This document shows, piece after piece, positions 1 to 12,883 of a stretch of DNA of 64,000 nt (position 1 is the first letter of the stretch; every line of letters begins with the position of its first letter). A program made the translations under genes and the position numbers. The notes under the pieces are model-generated. The model had not been told where the DNA came from, ran no database searches, and saw only the letters and a list, made by a program, of their open reading frames with translations. Origin of the DNA: Pseudomonas aeruginosa PAO1 (lineage in GTDB: Bacteria; Pseudomonadota; Gammaproteobacteria; Pseudomonadales; Pseudomonadaceae); assembly GCF_000006765.1 (NCBI RefSeq), contig NC_002516.2; one strand, 5' to 3'.

Positions 1-141
1 CGCCCACTTCGGCTGCTCCAGGTCGAAGAGGAAGGCCAGGTAGAGGGTCAGCAGCCCGGCGGCGACGGTGCGCAGGGCGAACAGCAGGGTTTCCCGCGGC
101 GGCCGCCAGAGCAAGCGGGCGTAGAATTTCAGCCCTTCCAT
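1..141 (-). CDS. FUSC-family (aromatic acid exporter-like) membrane protein, N-terminal part only; runs off the window start
   Basis: ATG at 141 reads MEGLKFYARLLWRPPRETLLFALRTVAAGLLTLYLAFLFDLEQPKWA, typical of the first FUSC helices. Confidence 0.8.
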   Translation of the reverse strand, partial: MEGLKFYARLLWRPPRETLLFALRTVAAGLLTLYLAFLFDLEQPKWA

Positions 142-541
142 GCCCGGCCCCGCACCTCCAGGCAACGGTTGGCCGCGGACCAGGCGGCGATGAAGCGACT
201 CGACATGCTGGTTTCTCGTTCGGGGTTCATGCGGCGGGTTCGCTTCCAGTCTAGAAGGCGCAAGGAAATCCGTGGCCGCCTACGGGGGCGGGCAGGTGCG
301 GTCGGCCACGGAGCGACGAGTCGCGGCTACAGGGTAAAAGCCCCGACAGCCTTCCCGGTAGCGCGTCCAGGCGAAAACCGTTTTCGCTGAGAACGAACGC
401 TGCGGCGCCTTTCGATTGGGTAAGCTTGCTCAAGGCTGGATCGATTTAGCTTGCGAATCAAGCGGATAGAAAGCCTAAGGAAAACGACCAGGAGGAGCCG
501 AGAATGCGTCGAGCGATTGCCACTGTATCGTGGGCCCACCG

Positions 542-1456
542 ATGAGCCTGCGTTTCGACGATATCGAAGCCTTCCTCAACGTCGCCGAACTCAACAGCGT
601 GACGTCGGCGGCCGAGCGCATGAGCCTGTCCAAGTCGGTGATCAGCAAGCGTGTCAGCGATCTCGAACGACGCCTCGGCGTCCGCCTGCTCTATCGCACC
701 ACGCGCAACGTCGAGCCGACCGAGGCCGGGCATTTCTTCTACAAGGCCGCCAAGGCCTCGCTGCAGGAACTCAACAACGCCGCGGAGATTGTCGCCCTGC
801 GCGAGAACGACCTGTGCGGCGAATTGCGCATCGTCACCCCGATGAGCTTCGGCACCCTCTGGCTGTCGCCGATCATCGCCGACTTCATGAGCCAGCACCC
901 GCGCCTGGAGATCGTCCTGCAGATGGACGACCGCCTCACCGACTTCGAGAAGGAAGGCTACGACCTGAGCATCCGCGTCACCCGCCTGGACGACAGTTCG
1001 CTGATCGCCCGGCCGCTGGCCAACAGCCAGCGGGTGGTCTGCTGCAGCCCCGACTACGCGGAACGCCACGGCACGCTGGACACCCTCGAACAACTGATGC
1101 AGCACGAGTGCCTGGGCTACAACAACGCCACGCCGAGCCAGGTCTGGACCTTCGAACCGGCGTTCCCCGGCGCCAAGCCCCGTGCCGTCTCGCCACGCGG
1201 ACGCTTCAGCAGCAACAACGGCCAGGCCATGCGCGACGCCGCCCTGCGCGGCCAGGGACTGGCGTTGCTGCCGCTGTTCATCGTCGCCGAGGACCTCAAG
1301 AACGGCCGCCTGGTGGACGCCGCGCCCGGCCTGCGCCCACTCGACGACGTGATCTACGCGATGTATTCGCGGGCGGCGGCGATGTCGCCGAAGGTCAAGG
1401 CGTTCATCCAGCATCTCCAGCAGGCGCTGTCGATCCCGCCCTGGGGCAACGGCTGA
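542..1456 (+). CDS. bexR: LysR-family regulator BexR (304 aa)
   Basis: LysR HTH (DIEAFLNVAELNSVTSAAERMSLSKSVISKRVSDLERRLGVRLLYRTTR) plus substrate-binding domain. Start chosen at MSLRF. Symbol from recalled PAO1 synteny. Confidence 0.85.
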   Translation: MSLRFDDIEAFLNVAELNSVTSAAERMSLSKSVISKRVSDLERRLGVRLLYRTTRNVEPTEAGHFFYKAAKASLQELNNAAEIVALRENDLCGELRIVTPMSFGTLWLSPIIADFMSQHPRLEIVLQMDDRLTDFEKEGYDLSIRVTRLDDSSLIARPLANSQRVVCCSPDYAERHGTLDTLEQLMQHECLGYNNATPSQVWTFEPAFPGAKPRAVSPRGRFSSNNGQAMRDAALRGQGLALLPLFIVAEDLKNGRLVDAAPGLRPLDDVIYAMYSRAAAMSPKVKAFIQHLQQALSIPPWGNG

Positions 1457-1570
1457 GCGACCGAACCATTCCGGCGAGGCTCCGGTCAGATACTGGGCAT
1501 GCGGAGAAGACTCCCAGGAGCCTGTCGTCTCTCCCCCGTCCGGCCACCCGGCCCACAAAGGAGAACTGCC

Positions 1571-1840
1571 ATGATCGTGCGTACCCTGCTCATCGCCGCC
1601 GCCCTGCTCGGCGGCACCGCCCAAGCCGCCGAAAGCACCGACCTGTGCGGCGCCAACCTGCAGAAGCTGGACGATATCCTCGCCGTGCGCGGCAAGACCT
1701 CGGTCACCGGTGCGCGGGTCACCGAGGTCAAGGAACTCCAGGCCAAGGCCAGGCAGGACCAGGCCAGCGGCGACACCAAGGGCTGCATCACCGCCACCAC
1801 CCAGGCCCTGCAGATCCTGCAGAACGCCGGGAAGAAATGA
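1571..1840 (+). CDS. Small secreted protein with a Cys pair (89 aa)
   Basis: RBS AGGAGA, signal peptide MIVRTLLIAAALLGGTAQA, LCxxNL...KGCI. Confidence 0.85.
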   Translation: MIVRTLLIAAALLGGTAQAAESTDLCGANLQKLDDILAVRGKTSVTGARVTEVKELQAKARQDQASGDTKGCITATTQALQILQNAGKK

Positions 1841-1855
1841 TCCGCGACAGACGCA

Positions 1856-1937
1856 AGGCGGATAACCGCAAGCGGTTATCCGTCCTACCCCAATGCGACC
1901 CTCCGCAGGGCGAATAGCGCCGCAGGCGTTATCCGCC
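1856..1937. repeat. GTAG-type REP doublet between convergent genes
   Basis: GGCGGATAACCGC-AA-GCGGTTATCCGTC-CTAC (1857-1888) and inverted partner GCAGGGCGAATAGCGCC...GGCGTTATCCGCC (1905-1937). Confidence 0.75.
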
Positions 1938-1975
1938 GACACTCCAGCCCCCGCCCCGACCGCGTCCGATTTCGC

Positions 1976-2521
1976 TCATTCGAAGCGCAGGCTTTCCCGC
2001 ACCGCACGGATTTCTGCCTGGCTGGCGTCGTAGGCCTCGGCCAGGCCGGCATAGGACAGCGAATAGGCCGAGGTCTTGCCGGCCGCGGCGAGCAAGGTCT
2101 GCTTCATCACCACGGCGCCGCGCTGGCGAATGGTGCAGGTGGTCTCCAGCGCCGCCAGCCCGCCGGTGGTGGACGGCTGCGGCGAGGTGCAGGCGGTCTG
2201 CAGGCCGTTGCGCAGGAACTCGATCTGCACCAGCTTGCGCATGTGCCCGAGGACTTTCTCCAGGTTCACTGCCTGCCCGCTCTGCAGGGGCATCCGCGTC
2301 ACCTCCATCACCAGTGCCTGGGAGCCGTCTGCCTGCAACTTGACCGCGCGCTGGCGCTGGCCGGCGCCGGCCTGGCCGGGCTGCGCGGCGGGCAGGTCGC
2401 TGACCTGCCAGCCCGCCGGCCAGCGCGCCATCGACGCCTCGGCCAGGCTCAGCGCGGACAGCGTGCCGACCGCCAGGGCCAGCCAGCGCCAGCCGTTGCG
2501 TCGCGTTTGCGCCTGCCTCAC
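1976..2521 (-). CDS. Exported DcrB/PsbP-like protein (181 aa)
   Basis: GTG at 2521 overlaps the ATPase stop (GTGA), RBS GAGGAGG, N-terminal hydrophobic signal, two Cys. Fold assignment is inference. Confidence 0.7.
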   Translation of the reverse strand: MRQAQTRRNGWRWLALAVGTLSALSLAEASMARWPAGWQVSDLPAAQPGQAGAGQRQRAVKLQADGSQALVMEVTRMPLQSGQAVNLEKVLGHMRKLVQIEFLRNGLQTACTSPQPSTTGGLAALETTCTIRQRGAVVMKQTLLAAAGKTSAYSLSYAGLAEAYDASQAEIRAVRESLRFE

Positions 2522-4503
2522 GGTGTACCCTCCTCTTCGCGTCCCTCCACGGCCGGCCGGGGCTGCCCGAGGGGCTCCTCGAAACGCAGCAGGCGTCCGG
2601 CATTGCCCAGCACCAGCAAGGTGCTGAGGTTGTGCAGCAGCGCCGCGACCATCGCCCCGGCCGCGCCGAGCAGGCCGAAGGCTGCCGCGGCGACGATCGC
2701 CAGGGTCCAGCCGAGGCCGATCGCCACGTTGACCTGCAGGGTCCGCCGGCATTGCCGGCTGAGCCGCACGCAGGTGCCGAGCCGGCGCAGGTCGCTGCCG
2801 ATCAGCACGATATCCGCCGAGGCCAGGGCGATGTCGGCGCCGCCGGCGCCCATTGCCACCCCGACCACACCGGCCTTCAGCGCCAGCGAATCGTTGATGC
2901 CGTCGCCGACCACCATCGGCCGGAAACCGCTGCCGATCTCCGCGCCGACCTGGCGCAGCTTGTCCTCCGGCAACGCCTGCGCCACCAGTTGGCGAATCCC
3001 CACCTGCTTGGCCACGGCGTCGGCCACCGCCCGGCGATCGCCGGTCAGCAACAGTTGCCGGCCCAGACCCAGTTCGCGCAGATCGGCCAGGGCCTCGGCG
3101 GCCTCCGCGCGTACGCTGTCGGCCAGCAGCAGCCAGCCGAGGAAGCGCCCGTCCAGGGCGATTCCGGCGATCGGTCCCTCATGCTCCGGCACCTCGCTGG
3201 CGTCGATGCCCAGTTGCTGGAACAGTTCGGGCCGGCCGAGGGCGGCTTCGCCCGCCGCTGTTCGTGCGACCACGCCGAACCCCTGGCGTTCGCGGATATC
3301 GCTCAATGGATGATAGGCATCGTGCGCCGCCAGGGCTGCCAGCGCTCGGCTCACCGGATGGCTGCTGGCGGCGCCGAGGCTAGCGGCCAGGCGCAGCACC
3401 GACGCCTCCTCGGCGGCATCGGCCAGGCGCAGCGCCTGCAGGCGCAGGCTGCCGTGGGTCAGGGTGCCGGTCTTGTCGACCACCAGCGAAGTCAGGTCCG
3501 CCAGCTCCTCGAGGAAGGCCGAGCTGCGGATCAGGATACCGTGGCGGGCGGCCACGGCGATCCCGGCGATAGCCGTGGCCGGGGCGGACAGCACCAGGGC
3601 GCAGGGACAGGCGGCGACCAGCACGGCGAGCATGGCCTGGGCATCGTTGGTGACGAACCAGGTGACCGCGGCGATCAGCAACACCAGCAACATGTACTGC
3701 CCGGCGTAGCGCTCCAGCAGGCGGGTGATCGGCGGCTTGGCGCGCTCGGCCTGCTGCATCAGGCCGATCACCTTGCCCAGGGTCGAGGCCTCGCCGGTAC
3801 GGGTTATCTCGATGCGCAGCAGGCCGTCGAGGTTGATCGCGCCGCCGTAGACCTCCATCCCCGGCGCCACCTCGAGCGGCACCGACTCGCCGGTGATCGG
3901 CGCGGTGTCGAGACTGGCCTGGCCTTGCAGGACCCGCCCGTCGGCCGGAACCCGGTCGCCGGCGCGCACTTCCACCTGGTCGCCCGGCCGCAGGCTGGCG
4001 TTGTCCACCTCGCTCAGGCTGCCGTCGGCCTCGATCCGCCGGGCATGGCTGCGGGTCAGCTCGCCGAGGGCGGCGATGGCCTCCTGGGAGCCGATCACGC
4101 TGCGCTCCTCCAGTACATGGCCGAAGATCATGATGATCGGCAGCAGCGCGGCGGTCAGCAGGTCGCCGCTGGCCCAGGCGCCGAGCATGGCCAGCGCGAT
4201 CAACTGGTCGGTGACGCCATGCAGGCTCGGATGCCGCAGGCTGTCCCAGGCCGAGCGGGCCACCGGCAGCGCCACCAGCAGCGACGCGACGCCGAGCAGG
4301 ATCTGGCTGACCCCGGCCTGGTCCGCCGCCAGCCAGCGCCAGGCCAGGCCGAGCAGCAACAGGCCGAGGGCGAGCATCGCCAGGCTCAGCTGGCGCGCGG
4401 CACGGCGCTGCTCGTCGCGGCTGAGCAGGCCGCCGCCGAACGGCAGGTGATGATGGTGATGCGCGCAGCCGCCATGGCTGCCGTGGGCGGTCGGCTCGCT
4501 CAT
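2518..4503 (-). CDS. Heavy-metal P1B-type ATPase (661 aa) with a His-rich N-terminus and no HMA domain
   Basis: TGES, CPC, DKTGT, HP and GDGIND motifs; RBS GGAGG before ATG 4503; N-terminus HGSHGGCAHHHHH. Confidence 0.95.
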   Translation of the reverse strand: MSEPTAHGSHGGCAHHHHHLPFGGGLLSRDEQRRAARQLSLAMLALGLLLLGLAWRWLAADQAGVSQILLGVASLLVALPVARSAWDSLRHPSLHGVTDQLIALAMLGAWASGDLLTAALLPIIMIFGHVLEERSVIGSQEAIAALGELTRSHARRIEADGSLSEVDNASLRPGDQVEVRAGDRVPADGRVLQGQASLDTAPITGESVPLEVAPGMEVYGGAINLDGLLRIEITRTGEASTLGKVIGLMQQAERAKPPITRLLERYAGQYMLLVLLIAAVTWFVTNDAQAMLAVLVAACPCALVLSAPATAIAGIAVAARHGILIRSSAFLEELADLTSLVVDKTGTLTHGSLRLQALRLADAAEEASVLRLAASLGAASSHPVSRALAALAAHDAYHPLSDIRERQGFGVVARTAAGEAALGRPELFQQLGIDASEVPEHEGPIAGIALDGRFLGWLLLADSVRAEAAEALADLRELGLGRQLLLTGDRRAVADAVAKQVGIRQLVAQALPEDKLRQVGAEIGSGFRPMVVGDGINDSLALKAGVVGVAMGAGGADIALASADIVLIGSDLRRLGTCVRLSRQCRRTLQVNVAIGLGWTLAIVAAAAFGLLGAAGAMVAALLHNLSTLLVLGNAGRLLRFEEPLGQPRPAVEGREEEGTP

Positions 4504-4531
4504 GCGCACCTCCCGGGGCGAGCCGCGGCGG

Positions 4532-4966
4532 CTATTGCGGGAAGCGCGCGTCCGGCCGGCGTACGTAGTCCAGGGCTTCCTTCTCGGTGAGCTCCCAGAT
4601 CTGCTTGACTTGCCCGTTGTTGTCGCTCTTCAGGCCGACGAAACTGCCCTTGAGCTGGGGCATGCGGCCATAGACGATGAACAGGTTCTGCGCCGTGCGG
4701 ATGCGCACCGACGGCGCCACCGAATAGCTGACGGTCTTCTTCCCCAGCCCCAGGGTGAGCACGCTGCGCAGCAGGCTCTGCTTGGGCTTCTTCAGGGTGA
4801 TGACCGGGTACTGCGCGCTGGCCACGAAGCCCACCAGCATGTCGCTCGGCAACTGCCGCGCCAGCGCCTCGCCGCCGCACAGCAACAGCGCCAGCCCGCA
4901 CAGCAGGGCCCTGCCGGGTGATAGCCGCGCACCGTTGCCCGTGAATGGAATACCGCCTGCCGTCAT
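4532..4966 (-). CDS. Small exported basic hypothetical protein (about 144 aa)
   Basis: Signal-like segment ALLCGLALLLCGGEALA, ordered sequence, collinear with the operon; exact start uncertain. Confidence 0.75.
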   Translation of the reverse strand: MTAGGIPFTGNGARLSPGRALLCGLALLLCGGEALARQLPSDMLVGFVASAQYPVITLKKPKQSLLRSVLTLGLGKKTVSYSVAPSVRIRTAQNLFIVYGRMPQLKGSFVGLKSDNNGQVKQIWELTEKEALDYVRRPDARFPQ

Positions 4967-5119
4967 TGCCCGTCCCGTTCGCCTGGTTGTTCGACTCGGC
5001 GCCGCGTTCCGCTGGCGGAAGCGCGTACCGAAGGTTGATGCCGACGCAGGGTAGCCGTTTCACGTTCGCTTGTCCGTCCATTGTTTCACAGCCCGCGAAG
5101 GGCACCGTCGGGCAGCGGC

Positions 5120-6160
5120 TCATGGCTGCCCACCTTGCAGAATCAGGCGGCCATCGTCGCGCGGATCGACGCTGCCGACCGAACCGGCCTTGCCGAGGAT
5201 CGCCGGCACCCGTTCGCGGTACAGGCGCCAGAGCAGGCCGGCATCGGTCGCGCCCAGCGCCGGGGCCAGGCCAACGATGCTGGCGGTGTCGCGGCGCGCC
5301 TGGGCCAGCCGTTCGCCGGCCTCGGCGCGGGCGAGCTGCAGGGTGCGGTCGGCCCCCTCGGTGGCGGCCTGGGTGAGTTTCTCCGCCTCGGTGCGCGCCT
5401 TGGCGACGTTCTGCTCGGCCAGTTGGCTGGCGGTCAGCACCGCGTTGAAGGCGCTTACCGCATTGCGCGGCAGGCTCGACTGCACGTCGACCCGCACCAC
5501 CTGGATGCCCAGCCCGCTGCCGGCCGCGGCCAACGCCGCCAGGCTGTGGTTGATGCCCTGCACCAGGTCGCCGCGCAGGCGTTCGCGGCGCTCGGCGACC
5601 GCGCTGTCGTTGCCGAGCAACTCCGGGCGCGCCACCAGGATGGTGTCCAGGTCGCGCGCGGCGCAGACCTGCACGGCGTTGCGCGCCACCAGCCGGTCCA
5701 GCGCCGGCAGCACGTGGGCGCCCTGGAGGACGTAGGCGTACGGGTCGTCGACCTTGTAGAACACCCGCACGTCCAGTTGCACCACCCCGGCGTCGCCGGT
5801 CAGCAGGTAGCCGGAGCCGGCCAGCGCGTCGCTGGACAGGCTGACGTCGAGATCGGCGCGACGCGCCTGCTCGGAACGCAGCAGGCCCTCGACGCGGCGT
5901 TCGATCACCTGTTCGGCGGACGGCAGCAGCACCACCTGCTCCAGCGGCTGCGGCCAGGCCAGCAGCAGGCCGGGACCGGCCAGGCGCTCCAGCGCGCCCA
6001 GGCGCAGCACTACGGCGCGGTTCTCCGGGCCGATCTGGCGGACGTTGGAAAACGCCCAGGCCAGCGCCGCCAGGAGGGTCACGCCGAACAGTGCGAGGAA
6101 CGCCAGGCGTCCGGCCTGCAGCCAGGGGCTGCGCAGCCCCTCGCGCGCTTCGCCGCTCAT
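5120..6160 (-). CDS. SPFH/band-7 protein, HflK-like (346 aa)
   Basis: N-terminal TM, ERAVVLRLG-like segment, LLTGDAGVVQLDV, Ala/Glu-rich coiled coil; ATGA overlap with the upstream gene. Confidence 0.9.
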   Translation of the reverse strand: MSGEAREGLRSPWLQAGRLAFLALFGVTLLAALAWAFSNVRQIGPENRAVVLRLGALERLAGPGLLLAWPQPLEQVVLLPSAEQVIERRVEGLLRSEQARRADLDVSLSSDALAGSGYLLTGDAGVVQLDVRVFYKVDDPYAYVLQGAHVLPALDRLVARNAVQVCAARDLDTILVARPELLGNDSAVAERRERLRGDLVQGINHSLAALAAAGSGLGIQVVRVDVQSSLPRNAVSAFNAVLTASQLAEQNVAKARTEAEKLTQAATEGADRTLQLARAEAGERLAQARRDTASIVGLAPALGATDAGLLWRLYRERVPAILGKAGSVGSVDPRDDGRLILQGGQP

Positions 6161-7197
6161 GGCCGGCGCCCGTTGGCCGGCGCTTCGGCGGGGAGCGCCG
6201 GCGGCCCGTCGACCAGCACGCGGAACGGTGCGGCATCGGTGCGCAAGACCAGCCGGGTATCGCCGTTGACGATGGTGCCAAGGGTGTCCAGCGAGCGCAG
6301 CAGGTTGTATAGCTGCGGCGAACCGGCGTAGGCCTTGCCGTAGATGCGCGCCGCCTCGACCCGTGCCTGGGCCTCGATCTCCGCGGCTTTCACCGAAGCC
6401 TCGGCCTGGATCACCCGGGCGTCGCGCTCCGCCGCCGAACGGATCTCCGCGGCCTGGCGACGGCCCTCGGCGGTACGCTCGGTGGCGATGGTCTCGCGCT
6501 CGGCGCGCATGCGGTCGACGGTGGCGCCGAGGGTCACCTTGGGCAGGGTCAGGCGCTCGATGCCGACCTGCACCACCTTGACCCCGTAGGTCGCCAGCAA
6601 CTGATGGTCGATCTGTTCGCGCAGGCGCGCTTCGAAGTCGCCGATACGCACCCGCGACGCCTCGGTATTCACCAGGTCGGCCAGGTCATAGGCGCTGGCG
6701 GTGGTTTCCAGCGCCGAGCCGACGAAGGTGCGCAACTGCCGGGCAGCCTCGTCCGGCTGGTTGCGCACCGCGCGCATGAAGCGCTGCACGTTGTCGGCGT
6801 CGCCCTGGACCTGCCAGGCCACGTAGGCCTGGACGATGATCCGCAGGCCATCGCGGGTGCCGACGTCCTGCAGGCCGCTGGAGGTGGTGCGCAGGCGCAG
6901 GTCGACCGGGATCGCGCTCTCGAACGGCAACGGCAGGCGCCAGGCCAGGCCCGGTTCGAGCAGGACCCGCGCCGGGTTGCCGAAACGGGTGATGACCATC
7001 GCCTCGCCGGAACGTACCTGCACCAGGCAAGCGGCGGCGACGGCGAACAGCACCAGCAGCGCGGCGACCAGCAGCCGGCGCCAGGGCGACGCGGCCTGTG
7101 CGCCATGGCCGTGATCGTGATCGTGATCGTGATCGTGATGATGCTCGTGGTGGCTGTGCGAGTGGGAGTGACCGAGGCTCAAGAGCGCTCTCCTCAT
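6157..7197 (-). CDS. SPFH protein, HflC-like, with a His/Asp-rich N-terminal tail
   Basis: VITRFGNP, GLAWRLPLPFES, RMRAERE and YNLLRSL motifs. Start is ATG 7197 (ATGA overlap) or TTG 7182 behind AGGAGA. Confidence 0.9.
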   Translation of the reverse strand: MRRALLSLGHSHSHSHHEHHHDHDHDHDHGHGAQAASPWRRLLVAALLVLFAVAAACLVQVRSGEAMVITRFGNPARVLLEPGLAWRLPLPFESAIPVDLRLRTTSSGLQDVGTRDGLRIIVQAYVAWQVQGDADNVQRFMRAVRNQPDEAARQLRTFVGSALETTASAYDLADLVNTEASRVRIGDFEARLREQIDHQLLATYGVKVVQVGIERLTLPKVTLGATVDRMRAERETIATERTAEGRRQAAEIRSAAERDARVIQAEASVKAAEIEAQARVEAARIYGKAYAGSPQLYNLLRSLDTLGTIVNGDTRLVLRTDAAPFRVLVDGPPALPAEAPANGRRP

Positions 7198-9194
7198 GGT
7201 GCGGATTGCCCGGCCGCGGACGCCGGAGCGGCGGACGGACGGGACGAAGACGGGGAATCCAGGCGGCCGAGGCCGAAGCTGCGCAGGTCGATGGTCGGCG
7301 CGCCGGCGCCGGCGATGCGGTGGTCGATGAGCAGCAGGTTGGCCTTGCCCAGGCCGCGTCCGAGTTGGCGGTAGTAGGCCTCCAGCAGGAAAGCCTGGCC
7401 GGCGTCGGCATAGCCTTCCCGCTCGGCGGCGAAGCGCCGGTCGGCGGCCTGCGCGGCGGCCAGGGTCTCGCGGGCCTGCGCGCTGGCCCGGTCGTGCGCC
7501 ACGCTGGCCTGTAGTTGCGCCTCGTTGCGTTGCGCGGCGGCCTGCCCGCGCTCGCGGGCGATCAGCGCCTGGGCGGTGATCTGCGCGGCCTGCACCGCGT
7601 GGTAGGCATTCGCCGCACCGGCCGGCGGATGGATCGCCTCGACCGCCGCGCCCAGTACCTCGACGCCGCTGCCGAGGCGATCGAGATCGGCCTGCACGGC
7701 CTGGCCGATCTGCTCGGCCAGGCCCGCACGCTGCTCGCCGAGGACCTCGTCGAGGGTCCGCGAGGCGAAGGCATGCACCAGTACGCGGCTGGCGGTGCTG
7801 CGCACCAGCGTCGGCACGTCGGCGCTGCGGTAGGTCGCCGCCAGCGCCGATGCGTCGTCGAGAGCGATGCGGTAGACGATGCGCACGTCCATGTTGACGA
7901 TCTGGAAGCTCTGCCGATGGTCGGCCAGGCTGGCGATGACCTGCGATTTCTCGCTGACGTGGGAGGCGTCCCACAAGCGGTTGGCGCTATCCGGGGCCGG
8001 ACCTTCGGCGGGCGCGAGCGGCTCGGCTCCGCCGTCGCCGGCGGCGACGCTGGTGGCCAACTCGTGGACCACCCCGTTCTCCACCGCCAACACCCGCCCC
8101 AGCGGCCAGGGCAGCCCCAGGTGCAGGCCGGGGCCGAGCACCGCGACCGGCTTGCCGAAGCGCTCGTAGACACCCCGTGCATCCATGCCGATCTCGCGTA
8201 CGCCGCTGAGCAGCCAGCCGCTCAGCGACACCACCGCCAGCACCGGCAGGAACGCCCGCCGCATGAAACCGAAGGCCCAGACCTGGCGCAGGTCGATGCC
8301 GAAGCGCTGGTGCAACTCATGCTGCAGACGCTGCAGGGGACGCGGCGGCCAGCGCAACAGGTCGGCCAGCAGGCTGGTGGCGACCAGGCGCGGTTCGAGG
8401 CCGGCACGCTGCGGCGCGAACATCGCCAGGATCGCCCTGCCCAGCAACTCCAGCGCCAGCGCCGCCGGCAACAGGCCGAGCAGTACCGCCAGGCGCGGGG
8501 CCCAGGGGTGTCCCTGGCGAGCCAGGAACAGACAGAGGGCGGCCAGCACCAGGGTACCGATCAACGCCCGCGCCAGTTGCCCGAGGACCGGGGCTTCCGG
8601 CCACTGCGCCGGCCCTTGGCTGGCGAGGCGACGTTCCAGCACCAGCACCGCGAAGGCCAGCAGCAGGCAGATACCGATGGCGAGGTCGGCCGCTTGCCCG
8701 GAACTGGCCGGCGGCAGGTCGAGACGCCAGCCGGCGGCTACCAGGCACAACGCCAGCGCCGCGCTCGCCGCCAGCCACAGCGCAGCGTGCCCGAGCTGGG
8801 CCAGGCCGTGGGCGATGGCCTGGCCCAGGCGCTCCAGCAGCCGTTCATAGGCGCTGTCGGCGGTGGCGTCGGGTTCGTCCCGCTGCCAGCGCAGCCAGGC
8901 AGGCCGCGCGCTGGCCTCCGCGCCGAGGACCACGCAACGCCAGGCCGCGACCCGGTAGGCCGCGTGCAGACCGGCGAACAGGACCAGCCAGGCCGCGCCG
9001 AGGTTGTACAGCAGCGGCGGCCAGAGCGAGTCGGCGGCGAACAGGCCGATGAAGAACCCCAGCACGGCGCAGGCGGCGGCCAAGGCGACGCTGGCCGCTG
9101 CCCATCGCCACAGCTGGCGCAACTGCCGGGGCGCCTGCTGGAAACGCGGCAGCGATTCGGCGGCGACGCCCTCGGCGTCCAGGTCGACTCTCAT
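7194..9194 (-). CDS. SPFH protein, HflK-like, with a large polytopic N-terminal membrane domain (666 aa)
   Basis: RBS GGAG before ATG 9194; about 7 hydrophobic segments, then GVYERFGKP...GLHLGLPWP and IHPPAGAANAYHAVQAA. Confidence 0.9.
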   Translation of the reverse strand: MRVDLDAEGVAAESLPRFQQAPRQLRQLWRWAAASVALAAACAVLGFFIGLFAADSLWPPLLYNLGAAWLVLFAGLHAAYRVAAWRCVVLGAEASARPAWLRWQRDEPDATADSAYERLLERLGQAIAHGLAQLGHAALWLAASAALALCLVAAGWRLDLPPASSGQAADLAIGICLLLAFAVLVLERRLASQGPAQWPEAPVLGQLARALIGTLVLAALCLFLARQGHPWAPRLAVLLGLLPAALALELLGRAILAMFAPQRAGLEPRLVATSLLADLLRWPPRPLQRLQHELHQRFGIDLRQVWAFGFMRRAFLPVLAVVSLSGWLLSGVREIGMDARGVYERFGKPVAVLGPGLHLGLPWPLGRVLAVENGVVHELATSVAAGDGGAEPLAPAEGPAPDSANRLWDASHVSEKSQVIASLADHRQSFQIVNMDVRIVYRIALDDASALAATYRSADVPTLVRSTASRVLVHAFASRTLDEVLGEQRAGLAEQIGQAVQADLDRLGSGVEVLGAAVEAIHPPAGAANAYHAVQAAQITAQALIARERGQAAAQRNEAQLQASVAHDRASAQARETLAAAQAADRRFAAEREGYADAGQAFLLEAYYRQLGRGLGKANLLLIDHRIAGAGAPTIDLRSFGLGRLDSPSSSRPSAAPASAAGQSAP

Positions 9195-9577
9195 CTTCAC
9201 TCCAGGCAAAACTCGAAGGTACCGGCCAGGCCGGCGCAAACGCCCGCAACTTTATAACAATGCGCGTTAAGAAGTTGTCATGATTTGAAAAACAGTCTGC
9301 ATCCCAAGGCTCTTGACTGGAAGACGAGAGTCTGTGTGCAGCACCCTGGGCAACACCTAACCAATCGAAAGGTTCTAAGCAGCCGGGAAAAACCACCGGA
9401 CATCCGTGCAAACGACCATTCGTCGGCAATTCTCATTCAAATCGGATTTCTTATAACCAATCCGCATAGGCCTACCGGAGCCCTCATCTCCCCCGCAAAG
9501 GCACGCCATTCCGGGCCTCGACGCGTAGCCGGCAGGCCTTTTCGCATAGCCTGACGGTTTTATAACAGCGGCAGAGC

Positions 9578-9591
9578 GTCAATAATCCGAC
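9578..9591. promoter_or_regulatory. Candidate FleQ box upstream of the deacetylase-like operon
   Basis: GTCAATAATCCGAC versus the recalled consensus GTCAnTAAAnTGAC; weaker copy GTCAAAAAAGAATC at 9608-9621. Confidence 0.5.
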
Positions 9592-9881
9592 CATCGACTG
9601 TGATAGCGTCAAAAAAGAATCATATCGATCCTTTGTAGCGTTATCCGGTGCCATGCAGTCCTTATCGAACAACCGCCGGGGCCTCGCCAAGCCCCGGTTC
9701 GAGCCACGCATTGCGTGGTCGCAGCAAACGTTTGTGCGGATTACCCCAGGAGGCTCGCCCATGACCGAATCGACTGCCGGGGCCGGAGTCCATGGCACAG
9801 CCTCCGGACAGGCTGGCGAAAGCCCTGCCGCGCGCAGGGAACGATCGCCGGTGACGGATCGTCGATGAGCCGGGGGAAGCC

Positions 9882-10844
9882 ATGCGAAGCCTGATCGGGA
9901 TGACGTTCCTGAACTCCTCCGTAGGCCAGCGCCGGCTGCGCCAGAACGGTATCGTGCTGCGCCTGGGACCGGTAGTCGCGGATCGCCGGCGCGCGACCCT
10001 GCCGCACCGGCAAGGCCACTGCCTCGATCGTCAGGACCTGGAAACCCTGTTGCTATGGCTACAGCGGCACTTCCTCTGCGTGCCCCTGGAACACCTGCTC
10101 GAAGGCCCCGCTCCAGCCTGCCTGCGGATCGCCCTGAGCGTCGACGGCAACCCTGCGGAACTGGCCGAGCAGGTCTATCCGCTGCTGGAACGCTACGAAA
10201 TGCCGGCGAGCGCCTTCATCGGCGGTGACCCGCGCAGTTGGCGCGAAGCGGTGGCCGAGACGCTCTGGCAGGCCGATGCGACTGCCGCCGGACCCTTGCT
10301 GGAACTGCTGGAGGGTTACAGCGGCGCGGCACTCATGGCGGTGTTCGAACGCACCGGCGACGACCAGCGTCGCAGCCGCAACCTCGACCTCCTCCTGCGC
10401 AAGCTGGAACGCCTCGACCCGGCCTCGCAGCAGGCCTTGCACGCGGCCTGCCCGGTTCCCGCACCGTACAGCGCTGGCGACTGGGAGCGGGTCCGCCGCC
10501 TGGAAAACAGCGGCCTGCTTCGCTTCGGCCTGCGCGGACAGGAGCCGCACCCATCGGCAGGCCTTTGCGCCGAGGACTGTCTCGGCCGCGCCCACCGCCA
10601 GCTCCAGCAGCATTGCGCCGCCCCCCTGCCGGTGTTCTGCCAAGCTCGCACCACACCCGCCGCGCAACCCGGCCTGCGCGCCGCCCTCGGTCGGCTTGGC
10701 TACCGCTTCGCCTTCGGCGCGCGCAATGGCCTGGTGGATACCCGTTGCGACCCGCTGGACCTGCCGCGCATCGAGGTGGATGCGGCGATCGCCGCCCGTC
10801 CCGGCCGGCTGGCCTGGCATATCTATCGTGGAGCCCGCCCATGA
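9882..10844 (+). CDS. Polysaccharide deacetylase (CE4/NodB)-like protein with degenerate catalytic motifs (320 aa)
   Basis: IALSVDG, YPLLERYEMPASAFI, LENSGLLRFG and LGYRFAF...DPLDLPRIEV follow the split CE4 layout. Confidence 0.8.
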   Translation: MRSLIGMTFLNSSVGQRRLRQNGIVLRLGPVVADRRRATLPHRQGHCLDRQDLETLLLWLQRHFLCVPLEHLLEGPAPACLRIALSVDGNPAELAEQVYPLLERYEMPASAFIGGDPRSWREAVAETLWQADATAAGPLLELLEGYSGAALMAVFERTGDDQRRSRNLDLLLRKLERLDPASQQALHAACPVPAPYSAGDWERVRRLENSGLLRFGLRGQEPHPSAGLCAEDCLGRAHRQLQQHCAAPLPVFCQARTTPAAQPGLRAALGRLGYRFAFGARNGLVDTRCDPLDLPRIEVDAAIAARPGRLAWHIYRGARP

Positions 10845-11716
10845 GCATGGCTTCCAGCCCGTTCCCAAGGAGGCGCGACAGGCAGTCGCCCTCCGCCGGA
10901 AGACCGCCCGAACCACGGGAAGCGAACGCGCCGTCGCCCGCCATGCCGCAGCGACGCCGCTCTCAGGGATATGGCCAGCCCAGCTGGCCCGGTATCAGCA
11001 AGGATCGTCCCATGACTGCAGACACCCCTACCTCTGTCGCTACCATCAACCACCTGCTGCTCGGCGCGCCCTACACCAGCCCACTGGTGATCCCCGGCGA
11101 CTGGCTGGTCGACGAGCTGGAAGGCGCCGTGGAGGTCGGCGGCTTCACCGACGGCCTGTTCCGCTGGCCGACGCGCAAGCGCAGCGGCCGCCCTTCGCCG
11201 ATTCTCTGCGGCGACCTGCTGCGCGCGGTACGTACCGAATGCGCCGAGTCGGTGCAGTTCTGGTGGGGTTTCAGTCCGAGCCTGGTGGGGCGCTGGCGCC
11301 GCGCCCTCGGCGTGACCCGCCGCAACAATCCCGGCGACCAGGCGGTGGCGCGCGCCCGCGCCGCCCTCGCCCGCTCGCTGGACCGCAAGGCGCCGCCGAA
11401 GGCACCGGCCGCCTGGTCCAGCGAAGAAGTCGAGTTCATCCGCCGCCATGGCAGCAAGCGCAGCCTGGCCTGGTGCGCCTACATGCTCGGCCGCAGCTAC
11501 CAGAGTGTCGCCAGCAAGGCCGAGGAGCTTTCCCCGCACAGCGGGCGCGACCGCAACAATGCGATCTGGAGCAAGTCCGAGGAAGATCTGTTGCGCCAGC
11601 ACTACCAGCAGCGCGGCTCGCTATGGTGCGCGCAGCAGACCGGCAAGACCCGCGCAGCGGTATTCCACCGGGCCAAGAAGCTGGGCCTGCAACGGCAGCG
11701 GCCGAAACACCCGTGA
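10841..11716 (+). CDS. Hypothetical protein with an HTH-like segment and two C-terminal Myb/SANT-like repeats
   Basis: ATGA-coupled start at 10841, alternative ATG 11012 with AAGGA; repeats WSSEEVEFIRRH...LGRSYQSVASKA and WSKSEEDLLRQHY...TGKTRAAVFHRAKKLGL. Confidence 0.75.
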   Translation: MSMASSPFPRRRDRQSPSAGRPPEPREANAPSPAMPQRRRSQGYGQPSWPGISKDRPMTADTPTSVATINHLLLGAPYTSPLVIPGDWLVDELEGAVEVGGFTDGLFRWPTRKRSGRPSPILCGDLLRAVRTECAESVQFWWGFSPSLVGRWRRALGVTRRNNPGDQAVARARAALARSLDRKAPPKAPAAWSSEEVEFIRRHGSKRSLAWCAYMLGRSYQSVASKAEELSPHSGRDRNNAIWSKSEEDLLRQHYQQRGSLWCAQQTGKTRAAVFHRAKKLGLQRQRPKHP

Positions 11717-11761
11717 GGCCGGTCGCCGCCCTCTCCCGCCGAGGCGAGAGAGGGCCAGTGC

Positions 11762-12883
11762 TCAACCGCGGTAGTAGCGCTGCGCCACGAAGGGCATCTT
11801 GCTGACCACCAGGGTCACCGGCTTGCCGCGCACCATCGCCGTCACCTCGCTGCCCAGGCCGGCCAGCTCGCTCGGCACGTAGCCCATGGCCAGCGGCGCG
11901 TTGAGACTCGGACCGAAACCGCCGCTGCTGACCTTGCCGATCGCCCGGCCCTGGGCATCGACGATCTCGGCGCCCTCGCGCACCGGCATCCGCCCCTGCG
12001 GCAGGAAACCGACGCGCTTGCTGGCAACGCCCTGCGCCTGCTGGGCAAAGATCCGCTCGGCGCCGGGGAAGCCGCCGGCGCGCACGCCGTCGGCGCGACG
12101 CGCCTTGGAAATGGCCCAGCCGAGGCTGGCTTCGACTGGCGTGGTGGCGCTGTCCATGTCGTGGCCGTAGAGGCACAGGCCGGCTTCCAGGCGCAGCGAG
12201 TCGCGCGCGCCGAGGCCGATCGGCGCCACTTCCGGCTCGGCCAGCAGGCGCCGCGCCAGGGCCTCGGCATGGGCGGCGGGCACGGAGATCTCGTAGCCGT
12301 CTTCACCGGTATAGCCGGAGCGGCTGACGTAGCAGTCCTGGCCGAGCAGCTCGACGCGGGCGAACTGCATGAAGGTCATCTGCGCCACCTGCGGCGCCAG
12401 GCGCTCCAGCACCCGCACCGCCGCCGGTCCCTGGAGGGCGAGCAAGGCACGCTCCTCGAACAGCGGCTCGACGCTGCAACGGCCCTCCAGGTGACGACGC
12501 AGGTGCGCCAGGTCCTGGTGCTTGCAGGCGGCGTTGACCACCAGCAGCAGGCAATCGCCGAGGTTGGCCACCATCAGGTCGTCGAGGATCCCGCCCTGCT
12601 CGTCGGTGAACAACGCGTAGCGCTGCTGGCCCACCGGCAGGTCGAGGATGTCCACCGGCACCAGGCTTTCCAGGGCCAGCGCCACATCGGCGCCCACCAG
12701 GCGAATCTGGCCCATGTGCGAAACGTCGAACAGACCGGCCTGCTCGCGGGTGTGCAGGTGCTCCTTGAGCACCCCGGCCGGGTACTGCACCGGCATGTCG
12801 TAGCCGGCGAAGGGCACCATCTTCGCCCCCAGTTCCAGGTGCAGGGCGTGCAGGGGCGTCTTGGCGAGGGTTTCTGCGGTCAT
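11762..12883 (-). CDS. gcvT2: Glycine cleavage T protein (aminomethyltransferase)
   Basis: [42 protein letters not shown]. Confidence 0.97.

Follow-up and report, generated by a model that had tools for sequence, protein, structure and literature searches.

Three SPFH proteins and the P1B ATPase HmtA are encoded by a conserved four-gene module that suggests a scaffolded metal pump

A 64,000-nt stretch of the Pseudomonas aeruginosa PAO1 chromosome (contig NC_002516.2 of assembly GCF_000006765.1; hereafter the window) carries on its minus strand, between positions 1976 and 9194, six co-directional open reading frames (ORFs) in the order A-B-C-D-E-F. Three of them (A, B, and C) encode proteins of the SPFH family, and E encodes HmtA, a metal-transporting ATPase of the P1B class. 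We report that A, B, C and the ATPase gene form an invariant four-gene unit well beyond P. aeruginosa, which suggests a scaffold-plus-pump machine. The best reading of the comparative data, and the one towards which we lean, is that A, B and C would form a hetero-oligomeric scaffold in the style of HflK/C, with HmtA as its dedicated client. An earlier interpretation of the window, made without database searches (the sequence-only reading), had likewise proposed a heteromeric SPFH cage dedicated to a metal pump; the co-occurrence of trio and pump in every informative locus and the cage-type fold of the SPFH proteins both back this proposal, which as a whole is partly supported.

Conservation of the module was followed from both of its partners. 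Genomes were scanned with a 10-sequence alignment of A, and the best 80 loci were kept, one per species, 78 of them titled Pseudomonas; breadth beyond this genus comes from look-ups of distant A proteins and from a metagenome scan with an alignment of the ATPase only. A, B, C and the ATPase gene are adjacent, on one strand and in fixed order in 80/80 of the loci scanned from A. Proteins with the architecture of A (600-690 aa) form a family of considerable breadth (210 clusters at 50% identity, E < 1e-30), and for distant members of this family (33-40% identity to A) the same module was present in 5/5 informative loci, amid wholly different flanking genes. These loci, which comprise two Xanthobacteraceae metagenome-assembled genome contigs and three other contigs (a sixth was too short to judge), each show a long Band_7 protein (~630-690 aa), two further Band_7 proteins and an E1-E2 ATPase, joined by 4-nt overlaps.

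The same picture emerged when the ATPase alone served as the starting point. A-B-C lay directly upstream of the ATPase gene in all 40 metagenome loci with at least 4.3 kb of upstream sequence, 18/18 partial loci showed as much of the trio as fits, and in no informative metagenome locus was a member of the ATPase family seen without the trio. ATPases of only 40-47% identity still carry it, next to SPFH genes that are 23-33% identical; among such divergent loci, Pfam recovered the full architecture in one (L164) and Band_7 in the A protein of another (L157). Complete modules total 135, with no exception in order or strand, and neighboring genes overlap mostly by 4 nt. Furthermore, the divergence of A, B and C tracks that of the ATPase (Spearman 0.59-0.72, n = 125). 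The sequence-only reading had staked its proposal on the trio and the ATPase occurring together, and had pointed to gene order across taxa as a check; both held, whichever partner the search began from.

The conserved unit is the four genes A-B-C-E, and gene D, the 153-nt gap between C and D, and gene F are additions of the P. aeruginosa lineage. Among the 80 loci scanned from A, D and F were found only in P. paraeruginosa, and D is absent from the other 79 Pseudomonas loci. In species outside this lineage the ATPase gene starts ~0-80 nt after C or overlaps it. D had no Pfam match even at E = 10; its homologues fall into only 13 clusters, all from the P. aeruginosa group, and its mature part lacks His and Cys. 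D was also considered as the NfeD partner of an SPFH-NfeD pair and was rejected at the level of sequence, no NfeD domain match having been obtained even at E = 10. F is annotated in two ways, as a protein of 181 aa (GTG start, signal peptide, overlap with the ATPase stop) or of 151 aa (internal Met start, no signal peptide), and its status as a GTGA-coupled exported protein therefore depends on the start chosen. The earlier claim of two co-encoded exported proteins survives in part: D has a signal-peptide-like N-terminus and F has one with the GTG start, but as lineage-specific extras neither is a member of the system.

Proteins A, B and C were assigned to the SPFH family by their Band_7 domain (PF01145), which scored 97.4, 113.9 and 68.1 bits, respectively, against a cut-off of 23.6. 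Scores with the HflK and HflC equivalog models (TIGR01933 and TIGR01932) remained below the cut-offs, at 65.6 for A and 85.3 for C versus 159.4, and 113.5 for B versus 134.4. The trio was rejected as HflK/HflC proper on these scores and on the absence of the hfq-hflX-hflK-hflC context of gamma- and beta-proteobacteria. As the sequence-only reading had stated, neither ftsH nor hflX lies in the cluster; hallmark motifs of FtsH and HflX are absent from the whole 64 kb, in which a single DKTGT occurs. The closest E. coli protein is HflC for B (2e-20) and HflK for A (5e-21). Mutual identity among A, B and C is only ~26-29%, which marks them as three old, distinct paralogues.

The cage-type fold was assessed for A in an AlphaFold2 (AF2) single-chain model and assigned to B and C by sequence. 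In the model of A (predicted local distance difference test, pLDDT, 78.9), a transmembrane (TM) helix at residues 306-329 is followed by a beta/alpha SPFH domain at 332-522 and by a helix of ~70 residues at 527-598. Foldseek matched the C-terminal half of A to HflK, HflC, stomatin, QmcA, prohibitin and erlin with a probability of 1.00 and E = 2e-11 to 1e-7. The model therefore predicts for A the cage-forming architecture of anchor, SPFH domain and long helix. The predicted topology is N-in, with a 6-TM domain (residues 1-300), a seventh TM helix as the anchor and a periplasmic SPFH domain; having seven TM helices, A would hold its SPFH domain in the periplasm, where those of B and C are also placed.

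The N-terminal domain of A was modeled confidently (pLDDT 86.6, predicted TM-score 0.80) and had no significant match in the PDB. Residues conserved in it lie on the cytoplasmic side and comprise E187, R188, a PEA motif, E249, R253 and an RFGIDL motif. The cation diffusion facilitator (CDF; YiiP/ZnT) family was tried as an identity for this domain, since the weak top matches came repeatedly from it, and rejected. The best match, YiiP, had E = 0.08 and a TM-score of 0.30-0.40, below the level of a shared fold, and the metal site of the CDF family is not present: the conserved residues are E187, R188, E249 and R253, with no Asp/His pair in TM2/TM5.

The ATPase has the features of the P1B class, namely the DKTGT motif, the PF00122 and PF00702 domains, CPC, and a TIGR01525 score well above the cut-off (539 versus 346). 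Membrane segment M4 carries CPC in 85/86 sequences and M6 carries HN[LFVM]ST in 83/86 (HNLST in the window protein); the family also has motifs of its own, an N-terminal LLSxxEQR and P[DS]LHG[IV]TDQL. ATPases of Pseudomonas and alphaproteobacterial modules are 54-64% identical. The nearest PDB structures are sCoaT (7qbz, 3e-77) and ZntA (4umv, 3e-76), and assignment to either subclass was rejected. Scores with the ZntA (P1B-2) models were far too low (NF033775, 291 versus 1240; PRK11033, 321 versus 1005), and M6 reads HNLST where ZntA has ADTGAT. P1B-4 ATPases have SPC in M4 and HEGxT in M6. The HmtA family has CPC rather than SPC, and its HN[LFVM]ST shares with HEGxT only the His and the S/T-T, which sets it apart from CoaT and CzcP. 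In public annotations HmtA has 661 aa, from an ATG at 4503, and the 663-aa form from GTG is not on record; the ATG at 4503 is the probable true start.

Both B and the ATPase have His-rich stretches. In B this is the His/Asp stretch HSHSHSHHEHHHDHDHDHDHGHG, with 14 His, and in the ATPase the His stretch HGSHGGCAHHHHH. The sequence-only reading had described a His-tailed HflC-like protein and a His-tailed ATPase, and the stretches are present; the C-terminal tail is not, as both lie at the N-terminus, before the single TM helix of B and the first TM helix of the ATPase, on the cytoplasmic side. With a threshold of at least 6 His in 30 residues, a tail is found among the 135 modules on B in 119 (~88%), on the ATPase in 10 and on C in 1. 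When B has no tail the ATPase often does (L157 and L165). A tail that moves between subunits is what would be expected of parts of one complex.

Two observations on these stretches concern annotation and function. The start codon of B in numerous Pseudomonas loci (L002:11956-12990 is one) is a TTG just a few nt behind an AGGAG Shine-Dalgarno sequence; a start call restricted to ATG removes the whole His-rich N-terminus of B, so automatic annotations may hide the tail. In one divergent locus (L083:8001-13996), and in L084, M4 has CPA instead of CPC and M6 has QNFS instead of HNLST, and B lacks a His tail. These correlated losses suggest a changed substrate or an inactive pump.

By its sequences, the locus is the published hmtA cluster PA2439-PA2434 of P. 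aeruginosa. A shares 98% identity with a P. aeruginosa cluster of 2056 members, and the ATPase, C and F exactly match proteins on at least 1000 contigs, the named cluster members being almost all P. aeruginosa; the locus is therefore identified as PA2439-PA2434. The identification of E as HmtA likewise follows from the exact 661-aa ATPase sequence, found on at least 1000 P. aeruginosa contigs, and from a gene content equal to that of the published cluster. In a znuA mutant, PA2434, PA2435, PA2437, PA2438 and PA2439 were upregulated 5.6- to 14.4-fold, the SPFH trio 9- to 14-fold versus 5.6- to 6.5-fold for PA2435 and PA2434 (PMC4542158). Zinc depletion also raises the levels of the cluster's proteins (PMC11761036), and purified Zur shifted the PA2439 promoter in a zinc-dependent gel shift (PMC8531726). 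A review relates that over-expression of HmtA raised cellular zinc and copper and caused hypersensitivity, hence the term importer, and also calls for more work to confirm import (PMC10393844). HmtA has served as a positive control for copper uptake (PMC11923076). The trio is known separately as PaFlo5-7, and its joint deletion led to ~20% less biofilm and mildly reduced virulence in Galleria (PMC13086221).

The SPFH study names neither hmtA, an ATPase nor zinc uptake (PMC13086221), and the zinc studies merely list the SPFH genes as co-induced (PMC4542158, PMC11761036). Our literature search found no paper that ties the trio mechanistically to HmtA or reports a universal four-gene module, and found SPFH proteins together with P-type ATPases or Zur only in P. 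aeruginosa omics papers. The genes, their induction and their deletion in P. aeruginosa are already published; what is new is the system as one unit. The sequence-only reading, which knew of no characterization, was accordingly wrong about the locus, which is published, zinc-induced, shifted by Zur and deleted as PaFlo5-7, and right about the link between trio and HmtA, for which the search returned no mechanistic account. Of 10 reference Pseudomonas genomes in a published survey, only those of P. knackmussii and P. syringae were reported to carry the paFlo5-7 operon (PMC13086221). In contrast, our scan has the operon in 78 Pseudomonas-titled loci, one species genome each, among them many from the P. 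fluorescens, koreensis, mandelii and cichorii groups.

Upstream regions of A provide a further link to zinc. A is preceded in 79/79 other Pseudomonas loci, at a distance of 38-116 nt, by a Zur-like box of the type cGTTATAtCGTAACg, which agrees with GTTATANTATAAC at 10-11/12 in 77 loci and at 9/12 in two. The window has two weaker candidates (Table 1). The one farther from A is the sole such match near the locus, and the window as a whole holds 3 versus 1.18 expected. The nearer and more degenerate one overlaps a -10-like TATAAA (9251-9256), with ATGACA (9276-9281) 19 nt upstream, and these two elements may represent the promoter of A. The degenerate boxes fit the weak Zur site predicted at the locus in the literature (E = 0.11; PMC4542158), and together with the insertion of D they may explain conflicting reports on the regulation of hmtA. 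The leader of A is far longer in the window than in other Pseudomonas, where the box lies so close to the start codon. The region between A and a divergent ORF at 9882-10844 (no Pfam match) spans 687 nt (9195-9881), has a GC fraction of ~0.61 versus 0.72, and contains three GTTATAA words, near 9257, 9457 and 9566.

Zinc-related genes were also seen near modules elsewhere. On a JGI 3300050821 contig (protein P0216), znuA (PF01297), a 172-aa ORF, an ABC ATPase gene and znuB (ABC-3) precede the module in a same-strand string with overlaps, and a large Ser/Thr kinase gene follows it. Near-perfect Zur-type palindromes (e.g., TGTTATACTATAACAT) occur at L010:19753 and 21479, with similar sites in a further 22 loci. 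For 17 of them, mostly from the P. syringae and P. cichorii groups, the palindromes lie ~4-6 kb downstream of the module, placing it beside other Zur-box-bearing genes that are putative members of the Zur regulon. One such palindrome is directly upstream of a gene for an AmiA-like amidase (Amidase_3 + AMIN); amiA is part of the Zur-controlled dksA2 operon of P. aeruginosa.

Taken as a working model, the reading of a heteromeric SPFH assembly dedicated to HmtA would run as follows. The unit would be made under zinc limitation, through Zur in Pseudomonas and as part of a znuABC operon in one other lineage. Two HflK-like subunits (A and C) and one HflC-like subunit (B) would assemble into a ring or cage in which B alternates with A and C, held in the inner membrane by its anchors, its SPFH domains lying in the periplasm, and enclosing or scaffolding HmtA. 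Such a scaffold would fence HmtA into a membrane patch and would probably stabilize or regulate it. The cytoplasmic His/Asp tails, usually those of B and sometimes those of the ATPase or C, would be arrayed densely at the cytoplasmic face of the pump, where they could bind Zn(II)/Cu(II); for an importing HmtA they would accept or buffer the metal, and for an exporting one they would donate or sense it. With its conserved residues facing the cytoplasm, the 6-TM domain of A would be the likely adaptor that docks HmtA. In this model we infer the physical contact, the closed cage and its stoichiometry, the binding of metal by the tails, the role of A as adaptor and the native direction of transport.

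Several observations weigh against this model. In E. coli, HmtA expressed alone alters both metal content and sensitivity (PMC10393844, PMC11923076), and transport as such can therefore proceed without the trio. The effects of the PaFlo5-7 triple deletion were small, in strains that were not assayed for metals (PMC13086221). One study found that hmtA mRNA in P. aeruginosa stayed low throughout, with no repression by added zinc (PMC8531726), which conflicts with the RNA-seq and proteomic data. No Zur-like palindrome was recognized upstream of four distant modules (L081, L083, L085, and L087), a negative that carries no weight without a Zur consensus for those lineages. Of 55 non-Pseudomonas modules, 13 have no subunit that reaches the His threshold; the tail is therefore not essential. 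Finally, contact of A, B and C with HmtA is deduced from genomic association.

The likeliest of the rival explanations, though improbable in our estimate, keeps the same complex and reverses the pump: HmtA would export metal from the cytoplasm, fed by the His tails, and the periplasmic dome would be a protected chamber in which periplasmic or secreted zinc proteins are metallated. The nearest solved relatives, sCoaT and ZntA, are exporters, as is every structurally characterized P1B ATPase; His-rich tails on the cytoplasmic side typically serve exporters as donor or regulatory elements, with PacL1 as the closest analogue; HflK/C-type cages enclose a periplasmic volume; and the import claim rests on over-expression phenotypes for which the review cited above asks confirmation (PMC10393844). 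Those same phenotypes, a rise in cellular zinc and copper with sensitivity (PMC10393844), and the use of HmtA as a copper-uptake control (PMC11923076) nevertheless point the other way. Induction by zinc starvation, the Zur-like boxes and the znuABC fusion fit acquisition more simply, and no candidate client for metallation is conserved beside the module. Ranked next, and likewise improbable, is co-regulation without contact, in which the trio would be an organizer or protector of the membrane in zinc starvation and would have merely an operon in common with the pump. SPFH proteins are general membrane organizers, HmtA works alone in E. coli, the 153-nt gap and the orphan gene D part the trio from hmtA in P. 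aeruginosa, and the unequal induction of the trio (9- to 14-fold) and of PA2435 and PA2434 (5.6- to 6.5-fold) would suit such a loose association. What it leaves hard to explain is that order, strand and tight coupling persist in 135/135 modules despite changing flanks and at SPFH protein identities as low as 23-30%, a constancy unusual for mere co-regulation, that the ATPase family is never without the trio in informative loci, and that the His tail is found now on B, now on C or the ATPase.

A bolder version of the scaffold model, which we regard as quite unlikely, envisages a self-contained metal-handling nanocompartment. The SPFH dome would seal a periplasmic chamber and a fenced patch of membrane over the pump, the crown of His tails would serve as reservoir or sensor, and the 6-TM domain of A would be a docking subunit or a second ion path, for which the faint resemblance of its model to CDF proteins is the only hint. 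If true, this would be the first SPFH cage with an ion pump as its client, and it could explain apparent import by a P1B ATPase, or the metallation of proteins in a closed space. Least likely of all, and in our view very improbable, is a reading of the trio as an alternative HflK/C, one that acts in zinc starvation as a modulator of the zinc metalloprotease FtsH, with the ATPase as an FtsH substrate or as a zinc supplier. The likeness of the trio to HflK/HflC in sequence and fold invites this idea, and a proteomics preprint mentions an interaction of HflK/C with the zinc protease HflB (PMC11761036). Against it, A, B and C all score below the HflK/HflC equivalog cut-offs, canonical hflK-hflC lie elsewhere in the P. 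aeruginosa genome (PMC13086221), ftsH and hflX are absent from the window and from the gene tables of the distant loci, and the invariant partner is the ATPase. 

The layout of the locus is given in Table 1. The six ORFs and the 153-nt gap described by the sequence-only reading were all confirmed on the minus strand, as were the overlaps, which are ATGA at A/B, ATGA at B/C and GTGA at E/F. The C-D gap has no unusual RNA fold (z = 0.82), an Rfam search of window positions 1-12000 gave no match, and a scan for sigma-70 promoters and terminators gave nothing useful on the minus strand at the locus. A perfect 10-bp hairpin without a U-tract, beyond the end of F, probably marks the end of the transcription unit. 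The convergent ORF on the other side of it, at 1499-1840 on the plus strand, ends ~20 nt before the hairpin and encodes 113 aa with a signal-peptide-like start and no Pfam family.

Table 1. Genes and sequence elements of the hmtA locus (PA2434-PA2439), in window coordinates.
Feature	Position	Strand	Description
A, PA2439-type, one of PaFlo5-7	7194-9194	-	666 aa; ~6 TM helices plus HflK-type anchor; Band_7 at residues 334-552
B, PA2438-type HflC-like SPFH protein	6157-7197	-	346 aa; single TM helix; Band_7; top NCBIfam match hflC
C, PA2437-type HflK-like SPFH protein	5120-6160	-	346 aa; single N-terminal TM helix; Band_7; top match hflK
C-D gap	4967-5119	-	153 nt; P. aeruginosa lineage only
D, PA2436-type orphan	4532-4966	-	144 aa; signal-peptide-like N-terminus; no Pfam match
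E, HmtA (PA2435), P1B ATPase	2518-4509	-	663 aa from GTG; PF00122 and PF00702; TIGR01525 539 bits
F, PA2434-type, DUF4946	1976-2521	-	181 aa; signal peptide if GTG start
Perfect 10-bp hairpin	1860-1881	none	GGATAACCGC-TT-GCGGTTATCC; between F and convergent plus-strand ORF 1499-1840
Weak Zur-box-like site	9445-9457	-	GTTATAAGAAATC; 9/12 to GTTATANTATAAC; ~250 nt upstream of the A start codon
Degenerate Zur-box-like site	9246-9258	-	GTTATAAAGTTGC; 8/12; position like that of the strong box of other Pseudomonas

Neighborhoods of the module differ from lineage to lineage. A census of flanking genes, made with crude ORF calling, was heterogeneous, with scattered metal-related families (DUF3299, NicO, CbiM, CobW_C, a TonB receptor, and DUF1826), among which DUF3299 was seen twice. 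At L157:2857-10701, a very divergent locus with an ATPase of 47% identity, a WD40 beta-propeller gene shares 4 nt with the start of A, and a DUF1826 gene follows shortly downstream on the opposite strand. Beside a Xanthobacteraceae module (L081:1589-5389) are genes for an FtsX-type permease and an ABC ATPase and two small ORFs without a Pfam match, a group that we take to resemble the Zur-regulated PA4063-PA4066 system. Two loci titled Xanthomonas sp. WHRI 1810A and Janthinobacterium sp. (L054 and L062) have A proteins 59-60% identical to that of the window, as close as those of Pseudomonas species, which could reflect mislabeling, contamination or recent transfer.

Most bacterial SPFH proteins have no known client, and for this trio comparative genomics points with unusual certainty to one, a P1B metal ATPase. 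HmtA is itself an outlier, a reported importer, all studies of which have left out its three obligatory gene partners; if these partners control its stability, direction or metal hand-off, conclusions on HmtA need revisiting. The finding also offers an account of the nearly silent PaFlo5-7 deletion, in strains not assayed for metal phenotypes. Zinc acquisition matters to the survival of P. aeruginosa under zinc sequestration by the host, and, given the parallel with PacL-CtpC discussed below, scaffolded P-type ATPase platforms may be a general principle. The module is best filed as an SPFH scaffold whose client is of a new class and, conversely, as a P1B ATPase whose scaffold is of a new class.

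Considered on its own, the pump combines traits of two known subclasses. Like ZntA and sCoaT, HmtA has DKTGT and an 8-TM core; its M4 has CPC as in ZntA, and the His of its M6 aligns with that of HEGST in sCoaT. It differs from ZntA, which has an Asp-containing M6, and from sCoaT and CzcP, with HEGxT and SPC, in the HN[LFVM]ST and the other motifs of its family and in being a reported importer.

As a whole, the module appears closest in structure to HflK/C-FtsH and the stomatin cages, and closest in function to PacL1-CtpC. With the HflK/HflC-FtsH system of E. coli it shares paired HflK- and HflC-like paralogues, each with an N-terminal TM helix, a periplasmic SPFH domain and a long helix, as well as an SPFH assembly with a dedicated membrane-protein client, which is here proposed from the genes. 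Unlike that system, it has three paralogues rather than two, an extra 6-TM domain on one of them, scores below the equivalog cut-offs, a His-tailed subunit, no linkage to hfq-hflX, and a P1B ATPase as its invariant neighbor. Stomatin cages enclose AQP1 and UT-B (PMC12407830), and PDB entries 9zd2 and 8z5g, for SPFH oligomers of the stomatin or QmcA-YbbJ (SPFH-NfeD) kind, were among the Foldseek matches of A; like these, the trio would be an SPFH oligomer with a specific membrane partner. The stomatin and QmcA cages, in contrast, are homo-oligomeric and cytoplasmic, have channels or NfeD proteins as clients, and lack metal-binding tails. In Mycobacterium tuberculosis, the abundance of CtpC depends on PacL1, a membrane scaffold that carries a DLHDHDH motif and is found in high-molecular-weight complexes and foci (PMC9374683). 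The trio would resemble PacL1 as a membrane scaffold co-encoded with a P1B ATPase and bearing a cytoplasmic His/Asp motif. Conversely, PacL is a small DUF1490 protein whose foci are flotillin-independent and whose motif is C-terminal, and PacL1-CtpC is induced by metal excess for efflux, whereas the module described here is linked to zinc starvation.

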